Below are positions 7,127 through 53,019 of a stretch of 64,000 nt of DNA, piece after piece. Numbering within the stretch: position 1 is the first letter of the stretch; each line of letters opens with the position of its first letter. The DNA is from Octopus sinensis (Eukaryota): positions 120,590,001 to 120,654,000 of the forward strand of contig NC_042999.1 of NCBI RefSeq assembly GCF_006345805.1. Direction: 5' to 3'. The position numbers and the translations under genes were made by a program. Under the pieces are notes generated by a model that worked only from the letters and a program-made list of their open reading frames with translations, made no database searches and had not been told where the DNA came from.

Positions 7127-7303
7127 ATGAATTCCAAAATAATCTTCTTCTGTCTGCTTGTTGCAGCCACACAAGTATATTCTATTAACAATGAGGAAAT
7201 ATGCTTTGGAAGATGCTTAGCTTGTTATCAAGTGAGCTCAATGTATTGTGTAATGGACATAAAGAGACCAACAAGCGTTGAAGGTTGCATTAAGTACGTA
7301 TAG
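7127..7303 (+). CDS. Small secreted cysteine-rich peptide, copy 1 (58 aa)
   Basis: MNSKIIFFCLLVAATQVYSINNEEICFGRCLACYQVSSMYCVMDIKRPTSVEGCIKYV*. Hydrophobic signal-like N-terminus, 5 Cys in the putative mature part; frame, length and stop conserved in two paralogues. Confidence 0.85.
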   Translation: MNSKIIFFCLLVAATQVYSINNEEICFGRCLACYQVSSMYCVMDIKRPTSVEGCIKYV

Positions 7304-7326
7304 CGTTTTGAATGGAAATTCACCTC

Positions 7327-7332
7327 ATTAAA
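7327..7332 (+). terminator. Candidate polyadenylation signal ATTAAA
   Basis: Lies 24 nt after the stop and is conserved in the paralogues (34899-34904, 53043-53048). Confidence 0.5.
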
Positions 7333-7479
7333 AATACCTGTATTCATTAATATTAAAATATCATTCATAATTTAGGTTTAACGTAATTGATACACGCACA
7401 CACGCATGCACACACAGACACACACACACACACATATATATATAATCCATAATATCGTACAAACAAGTACGTAAATTAT

Positions 7480-48085: not shown

Positions 48086-49379
48086 ACCATTTTTGTGGTG
48101 TCCAGCCTCTTACAAGTAAATGTTAAAGATACTACATTGAAGATATCATACTCTCTCTTTACCAACACACTCATGAGACCTATAAAGGGACCAGCTACAT
48201 TAGAATTCAATTACGTATATTTTTTCTTATTTCGGCACAAATAATTTGTAGAAGCGTGTAAGTCGAATACATCAACTGCAGTATTCAATTTCTACTTAAT
48301 TTATCCACCCCGAAAGATTAAATGGCAAAGTTGATCTCGGCGGAATTTGAGTTCAGACCGTAAAGCAGGACAAAATAACGCTTCGCATTTTGCCCGGCGT
48401 GCCAACGATCCTGCTACCTCGATGCCTTAAACTCATACGATTAATTCACTCTTGTCTCTTCTGAGATTCGAAAGCAACCTCATTACTCATGACTATATTT
48501 TAAGTTCCACCATAAATTTAGGACAAACTTTGAGTCATTTGTTACTTACCCGGGATGTGATCCCTGATCAAAGAACTCAACATAAATGTTACAAGTTATT
48601 TTTCTGTTTTATTTTTCGTCTGACCTGCAAATGATTTTGCTAATCCTCTGCCGTAAGTCAGCAACTGAACGAATTAGACATGTCTGTGCCATTGTTTAAA
48701 CATACTAAAGCTTACAACTTAAATTCTGAAATATTAGCATCTCACACAATCCACCGCAAAGCAATTTTCAGGGTTTCACTTGACTACTTCTTCAACCTAA
48801 ACTTAATTCACCTTCTTTACATAGAATTATAAATATAAACCTTCAAACGTGCAAATATTACGAGCAAGTATTATATTCCAAGATATGAATATTTGTAGGT
48901 CATACGAAGGTGTTAAGCGGTTTTTTATCCTTCATTTTCAGCTGTTGTTGTTTACTCAAGAGGAAATCAATTAACAGAAAGTTTTTTTTTATATTACGTA
49001 CTAGGTAAATATAGGTTTTATTTAAAGGAAACAAGAAGCATTTGCCATAAGGGTGAGATTTTCTGATATAATGGAGCTCATCTTCATTACATCACTTCAT
49101 CGCTGCAAGCATGGTAAATCATGAACAAATATTTTGAATATTTTTATCACATTTATTTGTTCATTACTAATCCTGCACTTTTATATACTTTTCATATATA
49201 ACTGCATATACACAGACATGACAGAAGTAAATATATTCCTTTATGATCATTAAAATTTATTTAAGTCTGAAATTATACATTCAAATTGTTTCACAATTAT
49301 TATAATGTGAATATTTAATATTTATTAGACATGTCCTTTGGATTTTTCAATGCAAGGATTCTATAAGGCAAGCTACTGA

Positions 49380-49900
49380 TCAGATGAATAATATTCTTTT
49401 GGGGATTTTCTTGCCCATTTTCATGCAGTAATCTCAAAAGATCTGGCTTCGAGGATGCTTTCTAGTTCTGTTTACGAAGTGACCTGTCCATTATGTCCCA
49501 GAGGTGTTCAATAGGGTTCATACCTGGCGACTGGTTTGGCCATAGAAGTTTTAATGCCATTCTTTTCCAACCAATCTTGGATCCTTCTAGCTGTGTGTCA
49601 AAGATCCCCATCTTCCATAAATAAAGAGTTTTCTTTAATCATTTCAACAAGTTCATGGGCAAGTTTGGAAGGAGTCCTTCATGCAATATGGACACATAGT
49701 TATCTGAGTTTATGTTTCCATCATACTCCACCACCTCTCATTGACAACTGCCCCAAATTGCACCCCAGATCATCACAAAATTGCTGCCGTGTTTCGCTGT
49801 TGGCAGCAATCTTTTCAGGTGAAATTCTTAGTTGAAAGAGTCTTTCAGGAGTCGTAGTTTCATGTTTGCCATTTTAGGCAACAGGTAACTTTGACTCATT
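49380..49900 (-). mobile_element. Tc1-like transposase remnant
   Basis: Minus strand reads HTARRIQDWLEKNGIK and WPNQSPGMNPIEHLWDIMDRSLRK. Confidence 0.85.
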
Positions 49901-52827
49901 CTGACTGTATAGTTGATATTCACTTTCGCTTATTATTGATGGTGTCCATACCATCTAAATGCTTAGAGCTAAAGTATCTGCTGATAATTTTGTTTTTTTC
50001 ATGATTGTGTGAAAATACTAGGAAGGGAAGTGCTTTAAGAATGATTAGGATGTCACATTATTTATCTATCTCCTAGTGTAGGTACCAGAAATGTTAAAGG
50101 CTACCACTGCTTCACATGGAGATGGAATGATGTTTGTGATTTTGTGATTTTGTGATTTTTGTTGTTTATTATAATTTGCAGTAGTGGTAAACAGGAGGGA
50201 GCATGAGCAAGAACAAGAGTGACACAAATTTATAGCTGATATTTTGCTTACATATTACACTTATTGCTTTCCTTTAATCAAATCAAATGTAGTAAATTCA
50301 GCTGACGATCCAAAATCTCAAAGATCACTCGACTTGCTTGTAAAATATCAACGGATTGCCATCGGCCTTCATTTGTACTACCTCCTACTCGATAAATATT
50401 AGTTTATTACAAAGGTTCCAAATCGTGACAGAACGCATCTAATGGATTGAACAACAAAATCGACATCATAGAAAGCTGGCGGTCCACCACCAAGTAGATT
50501 GCTTTTGTCTCGTTTTGAGAATCTCATTTTCACTAGTCTGGCGTAGTCGGGAACCTGCTGATTTCTCCTGTTGTGCATACTTTTTTTCTGTCCTATCGTA
50601 GTATGTATATACTCTTACACTTGCATTTTCATGAGGTTTTCATAGGATTTTCCCATCAGATTACTATGAGTAACCATGCTCTCCACATCATTGTAGCTTC
50701 TTATAATTCTATCACTTTTCACAGTTTTGTTTTATAAAAACAAAATTCTAATTTCGATACCACGCCTTACGTAGATAAGAATATGAAGGCACTTTTCGGA
50801 CGACTTCTTCATTGTCGTCTGTCGCATATATGTACTAATGCATATCTATAAAAGTTGTAATTTGCTGACGGTCGCAAAAGAATGTCACATTAATTGCAAC
50901 ACTTAATGAATCAATCTATCCATACATATTTAATAGGTATAACTGATTAGACCATATCATCACAGTAAGTTGTAAAACAATAAAACAACTATTCGAAGGT
51001 AAACAGAAGTCGCTATTTTATCTCAGCAGTTTCTTATTCATTCCTTTTATCAGTGACTAAATATATCCTAAGTTACTTCTTGATAAATATAAATTGCCAC
51101 CACCTTATGAAGTGTGCGCTATAATCTACGGTTTCTTTGTATTAACATTTGCGAGAAGTATCCTGTTGAGTGTACCTCAATAGCTTTAGATCGTACGTAT
51201 TACTAATCTACAAACTTTCTTTGAAATCATAACTAGTATAGAAATATTTTAATCTATTAACTGTATATACTAGAAACACAATTGTTGTATGAATCCACAT
51301 TTAACTGGATACTTTTTTTTGTTACAAAGGAAATATTTCGCTTGTAATTTTCATGTAACTTTAGATAACTTGCTTATTCCTGAAAATAAATTTGATGTGA
51401 ATGAATAATGTTTCCTAATTAGAAATTTGTATCCATATTTTTCCAAATTAAGCTGAAATTGTGACGATCAAATAACAACTTCATAATCAAAATAATTTTA
51501 TTAGTATAGTTTTTAGTGTTATTATAAATTGCGCATTGAAACTTAGAACTTCTGATGGCTAAAATTATGCTTATTATTTGACAAATCTTAATTTCCAAGT
51601 AAAATTAAGCATCCTGCAAATATGACGATGGTTATGTCATATAGCTAAGCATTGCAAATGATATGTATATACGCTACATTACTGAGCAGTAGAGCATATG
51701 GATAGAGGCAGATAAGGCCGTCTATGGTGTTATTGGCTTTCACATCCATAAAGCGCTTATCTTTACAACGTTTCTTGAGATCTTAAAACCCGTTAGCCCA
51801 TGGCCTTCTATGCCGTATACTCAGCGTAGGTGAGGATATGCACCGTTTTTAACATCATTTGTACCCGTTTCAATGAGCTTGGTGGCGAGAGGCAAAGTTT
51901 TTTGTGTGTGGAACGCATGATCGTAAGATATGGGTTTCAATTGGTTTAGCAGGAGGCACGTCGTGTTCTTGAGCAAAACACTTCATTGAACGTTGCTCTA
52001 TTCCAAGCAGGTGGTAACAATGCGTATATATACGCGACTGGCGTCCTGTCCAGGGTGGAATATATATGCCATGGTAGCCGGGAACTAGCCTTTGATTTTG
52101 TATGAAATATATATATGAACATGTATGTGTGTTCGCGTATGTGTGTGAGTGCCTCAGTGTTTATGTGTATGCGTATCTCTGTGCATGTGTGTTTATGTGT
52201 GTGGTGTGTATGTGTGTGCTCGCACACAGACGCATACATGACCCGAGAACTATCTTCAACTTAAAGACAGAGCTTTTTTAGCTAGTGCCTTCATCTTAAA
52301 TGTGTCCTCCTACAAGCTTAGAACCCTCCAAATGTTGAATTAAAAAACTAAAACAATGCAATCAGCTTAGAATATCGTCACAGGCGAATGCGATGCACAG
52401 AAGATAATCCAGTATCGCATATGAAGAAACACGTTCGGACGTTGTGTTTATTAATATATAGTGTTGATTTACTATGTAACTTTGCCATTTTTCATCTTTA
52501 TTTGAGTCTGAAGCGTCATCTATTTATCTTAGCGCTTTATAAGTTCAAAAGCAATGGTCACTCTGACTAGCCATAATAACCAACCTTAATAATGAATAAC
52601 AGTATATATGTATATCTGTGTGTGTGAGTGTGTGTGTGTGTGTGAGTGTGTGTGTGTGACAGTTTGTGTGTGTATATATATATATATATATATATCTGTG
52701 TGTGTGTGTGTGTGTGTGTGTGTGTATGTATATGTGTATATCGGTAAGCATACTTTTGATTTAGATGTTCCATTGCTTATAGGTATTTCCAATTCTATTT
52801 CAGTTATCTTTCTCCAAGAGATAAACG

Positions 52828-53019
52828 ATGAATTTCAAAATCATCTTCTTTTGTCTGCTTGTTGCAGTCACACAAATACAATCCGTACAAATATATGCCG
52901 TTGATAATAATGCAAGATGCTTTGGAAAGTGCTTAGCTTGTTATGAAGTGAGCCCAATGTTTTGTCCAGGTAAAATAGAGAGACCAGAAAGCGTTGAAGA
53001 TTGCTTTGAGTACGTATAG
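52828..53019 (+). CDS. Small secreted cysteine-rich peptide, copy 3 (63 aa)
   Basis: MNFKIIFFCLLVAVTQIQSVQIYAVDNNARCFGKCLACYEVSPMFCPGKIERPESVEDCFEYV*. Intact; acceptor and ATTAAA conserved. Confidence 0.88.
   Translation: MNFKIIFFCLLVAVTQIQSVQIYAVDNNARCFGKCLACYEVSPMFCPGKIERPESVEDCFEYV

Follow-up and report, generated by a model that had tools for sequence, protein, structure and literature searches.

A probable tandem cluster of secreted eight-cysteine protein genes, two intact and one dead, in Octopus sinensis

Cephalopods possess many lineage-restricted genes, and toxins, defence factors and pheromones, as well as useful pharmacological scaffolds, usually derive from small disulfide-rich proteins that are secreted. 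The attractin of Aplysia and its partner proteins, for instance, are small, helical, disulfide-rich water-borne pheromones of 6-8 kDa, and venom gene families are reported to conserve the non-coding DNA adjacent to their exons more strongly than the DNA that encodes the mature part. The secreted cysteine-rich MgCRP-I-type family of mussels combines a conserved leader and invariant cysteines with a hypervariable mature part, and is multigene (PMC4558851). Here we describe a locus of Octopus sinensis contained in a stretch of 64,000 nucleotides (NCBI RefSeq assembly GCF_006345805.1, contig NC_042999.1, positions 120,590,001 to 120,654,000 of the forward strand), which is called the window hereafter and to which all coordinates refer. 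We consider it likely that this locus is a tandem cluster of two intact genes (copies A and C) and one dead gene (copy B) for a probably secreted protein with eight cysteines (Cys), restricted to Octopus so far.

The evolutionary mode of this family is indeed alike to that of the conotoxin-type and MgCRP-I-type families, from which it differs in having no sequence similarity to any Pfam family, a different Cys framework (eight Cys in about 70 amino acids, aa), no pro-region, and a mature part that is spread over two exons. With the attractin-type pheromones it has in common the size, probable secretion, predicted helices, near-neutral charge and the CxxxC-type spacings that can staple helices together; however, the PDB profile and protein searches gave no match to them, and the number and spacing of the Cys differ. 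Overall, the octopus family is undescribed save for one uncharacterised database entry; as a kind, orphan families of secreted Cys-rich proteins that evolve fast are well known.

A second coding exon in each copy

An earlier note on this DNA, prepared from the letters alone, had reported three paralogous open reading frames (ORFs), and translation confirmed them at 7127-7303 (58 aa, reading MNSKIIFFCLLVAATQVYSINNEEICFGRCLACYQVSSMYCVMDIKRPTSVEGCIKYV and then a stop), 34699-34875 and 52828-53019 (63 aa), belonging to copies A, B and C, respectively. It was also correct that all three share the N-terminus MNxKIIFxCLLVAxTQ and a TTTCAG located 24 nucleotides (nt) upstream of the ATG, that copies A and C are intact and display the spacing C-x3-C-x2-C-x7-C-x12-C, and that copy B is broken; the last has a TGA at codon 26 (34774-34776). 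The claim that did not survive was that the proteins end where the ORFs end, since every unit was found to contain a splice donor at the end of exon 1 and a second coding exon farther downstream.

The second exon was revealed by a homologue. An exhaustive profile search of 1.84 billion representative proteins, with a profile of exon 1 as query, returned one true match (expectation value, E, 4.9e-25), namely UniRef100_A0A0L8IBT9, an uncharacterised protein of 87 aa from Octopus bimaculoides, which was recovered again by the profile of the spliced products (E 8e-48); the two remaining matches of the exon-1 profile were low-complexity repeats and were dismissed. A word-indexed protein search with the copy C peptide gave no match, and it is to be noted that this index also missed A0A0L8IBT9. 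The homologue parallels the window peptides up to ...SVEGCIK and then has FCDPEARNIISGIEKCKTAANKIDCVDAIIH, where the window ORFs read YV and stop, and thereby extends 30 residues beyond their endpoint. By tblastn, this tail matched the window at 12750-12839 (E 4.7e-12, 77% identity), 60959-61051 (E 4.5e-6) and 37621-37692 (E 1.4e-4). One of these segments lies downstream of each exon-1 copy, exon 1 and exon 2 being 5.5 kb apart in copy A, 7.9 kb in C and 2.8 kb in B. Since A0A0L8IBT9 runs on and its tail maps to these downstream exons, the terminal YV and stop represent intron read-through past the donor. The donors are found at the homologous point of all three copies (the slash marking the junction: AA/GTACGT at 7293/7294 in A, GA/GTACGT at 53009/53010 in C, and GA/GTATGT in B), and the exon-2 acceptors are TTTCAG in A, TTGTAG in C and TATAAG in B.

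The exons so defined, by homology, all lie on the plus strand. Exon 1 of copy A (7127-7293) covers Met1 through the second base of codon 56 and encodes the signal-like MNSKIIFFCLLVAATQVYS followed by five Cys, and its exon 2 (12749-12851), preceded by the acceptor at 12743-12748, completes codon 56 (Asn), continues with FCVPEARKIISGIESCKTDANKLKCVDAIVRQN and ends in TGA. In copy C, exon 1 (52828-53009) carries an in-frame 15-nt tandem duplication in the c-region of the signal (52872-52886 / 52887-52901), which is the sole exon-1 indel between A and C, and exon 2 (60958-61054, acceptor at 60952-60957) completes codon 61 (Asp), continues with FCGLGYGKIICDIKKCKTKTNKIGCVNAVIN, which includes one extra Cys, and ends in TAG; the exon-2 sequences of A and C align without gaps up to the stop. 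Phase-2 splicing would thus join 89 aa in copy A, ending SVEGCINFCVPEARKIISGIESCKTDANKLKCVDAIVRQN, and 92 aa in copy C, ending SVEDCFDFCGLGYGKIICDIKKCKTKTNKIGCVNAVIN. In exon 1 of copy B (34699-34865), the TGA takes the place of the first mature Cys, and the last Cys of this exon (Cys54) has become Tyr (34858-34860). Its exon 2 persists as a remnant at 37626-37692 (FCGLEFGNIIRGVDKCTTSAGK), cut by a deletion equivalent to 12816-13314 of A that removed the last Cys and the stop (the break between the aligned segments falling at 37692/37701). Three lesions mark copy B as a pseudogene, namely the premature stop, a lost Cys and the deleted end of exon 2.

Spliced copy A is 76% identical to A0A0L8IBT9 (77% for exon 1 against residues 1-57), and the spacing of their Cys is the same, i.e., 16/3/2/7/12/3/13/8, starting from the Cys in the signal region. 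The two also agree in the signal-like leader, in length (87 vs 89 aa) and in the codon position of the exon junction. The framework C-x3-C-x2-C-x7-C-x12-C-x3-C-x13-C-x8-C follows the leader exactly in both; copy C, which is 56% identical to copy A after splicing, holds all eight framework Cys plus the extra one, and copy B lacks three. Consequently, the 5-Cys mature peptide of about 39 aa that had been proposed corresponds to the N-terminal half of a mature protein that has about 68-70 aa and eight Cys (nine in C), and the locus illustrates how genes of this type are cut short at exon boundaries when they are read from ORFs.

A0A0L8IBT9 differs from the window genes in being an uncharacterised prediction with no name, domain or literature, and it is identical to none of the window copies; therefore, it is either the orthologue in another species or a further paralogue. 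The description of the family as unrecognised was accurate to the extent that no described family contains it, but one member had already been predicted. The protein collections apparently lack O. sinensis, as even an ORF of a long interspersed nuclear element in the window found a best match of only 53% identity. The scarcity of relatives and annotation is, for this reason, weak evidence, and the single homologue says little on the size of the family in cephalopods.

Predicted protein and comparison with known families

By rule of thumb, the leader has the features of a signal peptide, i.e., a basic n-region (MNxK), an 11-residue hydrophobic core with a mean Kyte-Doolittle value of 2.9-3.3, and the residues V-Y-S or I-Y-A, small at -3/-1, ahead of the likely cleavage point. 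The mature parts of about 68-70 aa would have a mass of 7.5-7.8 kDa and isoelectric points (pI) of 7.7 (A), 8.1 (C) and 6.7 (O. bimaculoides), with acidic and basic residues nearly balanced. The mature parts are therefore not cationic, and the earlier argument against a classical cationic antimicrobial holds in the absence of a strong positive charge, although the spliced form is near-neutral to slightly basic by pI rather than neutral to acidic as had been stated. A prohormone-type precursor was considered and rejected, the KR/RR site before Pro being replaced by ER in copy C. AlphaFold predicted helical models at low confidence (a pLDDT of 64 for the exon-1-only peptide, and 56 when the full protein was modelled from a 7-row alignment), and Foldseek found no fold match in PDB with this weak query model. 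The predicted tryptic peptides of copy A include CLACYQVSSMYCVMDIK, RPTSVEGCINFCVPEAR and IISGIESCK.

The lack of any matching described family, as had been proposed, was borne out at several levels. Pfam, in which toxin families are included, returned no family at E <= 10 for the spliced products, PDB returned nothing significant, and the literature search with the peptide strings and with the A0A0L8IBT9 accession found no paper. For the known animal-toxin families in particular, no Pfam model, PDB sequence or PDB fold matched the octopus family. The sole match of the unspliced peptides in the Pfam and PDB searches was Carla_C4 (E 0.046), which was below the cut-off of that family and was rejected.

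A local resemblance to the c-type lysozyme/alpha-lactalbumin family (PF00062) was also encountered. In the PDB profile search, a mutant of human lysozyme was matched with an E of 0.085 (the next match, NisB, being at E 1.3), over some 40 residues in which four Cys have near-identical spacing, YQVSSRYC...C-x3-C-x13-C being aligned with FQINSRYWC...C-x3-C-x13-C. Human lysozyme also contains 'MCLA', and the Smith-Waterman scores of two of the three members exceeded those of shuffled sequences with fixed Cys (P 0.02-0.05). These likenesses could be explained if the octopus protein were a drastically shortened relative of lysozyme, without the beta-domain and the catalytic residues, but we find this highly improbable. 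The match was selected post hoc among 177,635 sequences and spans lysozyme residues 55-96 only, and the third member showed no excess similarity (P 0.67). The Pfam Lys model did not match at E <= 10, whereas control lysozymes score 1e-55; the hhalign probability was 0.4%, and no lysozyme appeared in the Foldseek results obtained with the weak model. Moreover, the octopus mature protein, of 68-70 aa, has half the length of a c-type lysozyme, which comprises alpha and beta domains in about 120-130 aa, and the catalytic Glu/Asp region, with Glu35 and Asp52 in lysozyme, cannot be aligned. Membership in the c-type lysozymes was thus rejected by the Pfam, hhalign, shuffling and Foldseek tests, and the likeness is regarded as a chance resemblance.

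Conservation, selection and the alternatives to a working gene

To provide a neutral background, 92-nt windows of the alignable flanks were used, in which the median identity was 76% for A-C, 74% for A-B and 76% for B-C. Directly downstream of exon 1, the opening ~92 nt of the intron scored 94.6%, 89% and 90% in the same three pairs; the A-C value ties with the top flank window, none being higher, and the other two are at or near the top. The intron start (first ~92-100 nt; 7294-7392 in A, 34866-34972 in B, 53010-53109 in C) is the best conserved stretch of the duplicated unit. The 63 nt upstream of exon 1 together with the 5' untranslated region (UTR) are 79-92% identical, and between A and C the non-coding part of the exon-1 block as a whole is 91.5% identical. 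The mature coding part of exon 1, on the other hand, is 75-79% identical (A-C 78.6%), and the coding part of exon 2 is 62-71% identical (A-C 71%).

In copy A, the conserved intron start (plus strand) opens with the donor GTACGT and contains ATTAAA at 7327 and 7352, and it is this segment that had been taken for the C-terminal YV, the stop and the 3' UTR. The observation of a downstream ATTAAA was itself valid, there being two such motifs per copy (34899/34924 in B, 53043/53068 in C); their proposed role in polyadenylation was not retained, since they are intronic in the spliced model, and that assignment was probably wrong. A folding test detected no RNA-structure signal in the conserved intron start, which may owe its conservation to gene conversion, to a part in the control of splicing, or to use as an alternative 3' end.

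An alternative that relies on the same segment is that the transcripts, all or some of them, end at ATTAAA after exon 1 through intronic polyadenylation or intron retention, giving precursors of 58-63 aa and a 5-Cys product of about 39 aa ending in YV. This would agree with the TAG located two codons beyond the donor in all three copies, with the conservation of the two ATTAAA motifs, and with the top-ranking conservation of the ~92 nt, for which no RNA structure accounts and which would fit a 3' UTR in use. Nonetheless, we consider it unlikely. The only homologue is spliced beyond exon 1; exon 2, with its three Cys, stays open in both intact copies; and five is an odd number of Cys, whereas spliced copy A and the O. 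bimaculoides homologue have eight (and copy C nine). It is also to be noted that ATTAAA is a common motif in DNA of 66% A+T. If the two-exon gene is the principal form, as we prefer, a second, shorter 5-Cys isoform might still be generated by polyadenylation in the conserved intron start.

The coding nature of exon 1 was assessed by random placement of the 32 substitutions observed between copies A and C in 20,000 trials. The frame remained open in 28% of the trials and the five Cys were kept in 8%, while the ATG, the open frame and the five Cys were kept together in 1.3%. An open frame of 58 codons is not rare by chance in 66% A+T DNA, and runs of 40-55 codons without a stop also occur in other frames of the block. 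By the method of Nei and Gojobori, the omega of A vs C came to 0.33 for the signal region. For the mature region it was 1.6, with 45.7 non-synonymous vs 7.3 synonymous differences, and this value (estimates of ~1.2-1.6) was not significantly different from 1 (Fisher p 0.23-0.58). The random-placement result, the in-frame indel and the signal omega together provide moderate evidence of coding constraint on the exon-1 frame. Positive selection in the mature part was rejected as a conclusion, the excess of omega over 1 lacking significance, which leaves room for relaxed constraint. The mature part changes at the neutral rate or faster with all framework Cys kept, a signature left either by diversifying selection or by a strong relaxation of the constraint on the loops. 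The comparison of A and C supports the previously suggested pattern of conserved leader, fixed Cys and variable loops, and the one pseudogenised copy fits the birth-and-death duplication that had been suggested along with it.

A number of points weigh against copies A and C being working genes for a secreted protein. In identity, the mature coding parts do not exceed the neutral flank median, i.e., they are no better kept than the flanks, and their omega is indistinguishable from 1, as stated. The ORF was chosen post hoc, which weakens the evidence of coding constraint. A0A0L8IBT9 is a gene prediction only, the signal peptide was judged heuristically, the AlphaFold models are too weak for fold assignment, and copy C would have an odd number of mature Cys, namely nine. 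In exact look-ups, neither the two ORF products nor the two spliced products were present in a collection of 15 billion proteins, which seemingly lacks this species, and no matching peptide or accession was found in the supplements of three proteome papers of Octopus vulgaris (skin mucus, posterior salivary gland, and ink), the files of which were possibly partial.

Some of these points would be expected if the window copies were decaying relics, nonfunctional and in neutral drift, with the frames of A and C open by luck. Such a reading would draw on the lack of preferential conservation of the mature coding part, on its omega, on the clearly dead copy B, and on the look-ups and proteome supplements, which gave no sign of expression. 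We allow it a slim chance, since it must be set against the integrity of A and C, which at ~25% divergence have kept both exons with both of their splice sites, an intact start and stop region, and all eight framework Cys; for exon 1 alone, chance would account for this in the 1.3% of trials given above. Furthermore, the signal region is constrained, and copy A, at 76% identity to the O. bimaculoides protein, retains precisely the same framework.

The reading that we prefer, a cluster of two-exon genes for a secreted protein, would operate as follows. Exon 1 would carry, besides a short 5' UTR, the code for what looks like a cleavable signal peptide and for the first five Cys; the phase-2 intron after it, 2.8-7.9 kb long and packed with transposon debris, would be removed; exon 2 would add ~33 more residues with three Cys and the stop; and a third, non-coding exon with AATAAA would probably terminate the transcript. 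In the secretory pathway, the product would shed ~19-24 residues, and the remaining 7.5-7.8 kDa would adopt a mainly helical fold with up to four disulfides. The cluster expanded by segmental duplication, after which the leader and the exon-adjacent non-coding DNA were retained, while the mature coding part diverged at least at neutral speed with each framework Cys preserved. Extracellular proteins that serve as toxins, in host defence, or in reproduction or as pheromones are known to diverge in this way.

We favour a role as an extracellular effector or signal, with equal regard to venom or saliva, defence, and reproduction. More tentatively, and with considerable reservation, the family could represent a previously undescribed helical scaffold of four disulfides, with no detectable relative beyond Octopus, that is under diversifying selection and used outside the cell, as a salivary or venom component, in mucosal defence, or as a water-borne or reproductive signal. 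Should expression in a gland prove true, it would be a new octopus-specific protein scaffold; otherwise, it would be one more fast-evolving orphan. In either case, the cluster constitutes a testable case, in which the gene model has been corrected and two intact paralogues stand beside a dated pseudogene that serves as an internal neutral control.

Duplicated units, transcript ends and mobile elements

Self-comparison of the window by blastn showed three collinear tandem units, 65-80% identical and interrupted by transposons, each at least 9-18 kb long. Unit A (approximately 3068-14602) and unit C (approximately 43945-63631) bear gene copies A and C, and unit B (approximately 30372-39451) bears the pseudogene copy, all on the plus strand. 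The three ORFs occupy equivalent relative positions in these units; therefore, the family is a product of segmental duplication and not of a small mobile block. The 'tandem family' of the earlier note thus stands with respect to paralogy, but its origin lies in the three segmental duplicates. The copies have in common a block of ~360 bp around exon 1, with TA/CA microsatellites on both sides, and tblastn and blastn searches with the peptides and this block found no fourth copy within the window.

The flanking microsatellites, the other open frames of the block and the abundance of mobile elements in the window are what one would expect of transposon-derived sequences or of chance ORFs in a repeated non-coding block. 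We find this explanation hardly credible, however, as there are three copies only within the window, each syntenic within a large duplicate, the ORFs contain no transposon domain, and an independently annotated homologue has a matching second exon.

Unit C alone contains an insertion of ~410 bp (62410-62822) that is found neither in A nor in B, and at which the collinearity of A and C is broken (14222/14219 in A); by eye, it comprises a GC-richer sequence, possibly like a short interspersed nuclear element, and a TA microsatellite. A recent tandem duplication of 1 kb is located immediately upstream of the pseudogene copy B (32621-33663 vs 33603-34612, 95.5% identical, spanning 32621-34612).

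As regards the transcript ends, copy A has at 7086-7126 (plus strand) a polypyrimidine tract, the TTTCAG (7097-7102) and a putative 5' UTR of 24 nt that includes TGA TAA in frame; this arrangement is kept in the three copies, all of which have in-frame stops between TTTCAG and ATG. The TTTCAG may be the acceptor for a 5' exon, or, alternatively, transcription may start just past the (TA)n tract. At the other end, 17 nt past the stop of copy A (12852-12868, plus strand) lead to a donor-like ATAG/GTAATAAT that is conserved in A and C. Some 740 nt beyond this point, TTTTACAG followed by AATAAA exactly 44 nt on is kept in all three units, which makes a short terminal non-coding exon with AATAAA plausible. 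The candidate exon would span 13610-13680 in copy A, with TTTTACAG as acceptor and AATAAA at 13654, and 61785-61850 in copy C, with the acceptor at 61785 and AATAAA at 61829 (both on the plus strand); the conserved motif of copy B lies at 38032-38100, with the acceptor at 38032 and AATAAA at 38076.

A further conserved patch is located within the introns, at 10409-10518 (A), 35740-35849 (B) and approximately 56610-56720 (C), which is 93-95% identical in every pair and contains the 19-mer TTGTTATCTAGTATTTTGA exactly in all three. The patch matched nothing in Rfam and did not fold convincingly (z -0.5 and -1.9), and it may be a regulatory element. In the window as a whole, the conserved non-coding patches showed neither an Rfam match nor a folding signal that would mark them as structured RNAs, and no tRNA genes were found.

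The intron of copy A harbours a fragment of a mariner-type transposase (7911-8207, minus strand; Pfam Transposase_1, 1.6e-18) and an element bearing a reverse transcriptase (8935-9845, minus strand). Pieces of the latter (of its part 8935-9463) recur with 87-90% identity in the intron of copy C, at 58279-58573 and 59850-60090. Between units A and B there is a non-LTR (long terminal repeat) retrotransposon (19815-23561, plus strand) with several large ORFs, RVT_1 and zf-RVT domains, and a long poly-Asn run that opens its first ORF; its best database relatives are ~50% identical. An Exo_endo_phos_2 endonuclease-reverse-transcriptase fragment is found at 40299-41969, beside an inverted partial duplicate of itself (41413-41529 vs 41656-41773, 97% identical). 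Young local duplications are present within 24249-26246, as inverted and direct repeats of 96-99% identity, and a tandem pair of 565 bp, 98.4% identical, occupies 16354-17483.

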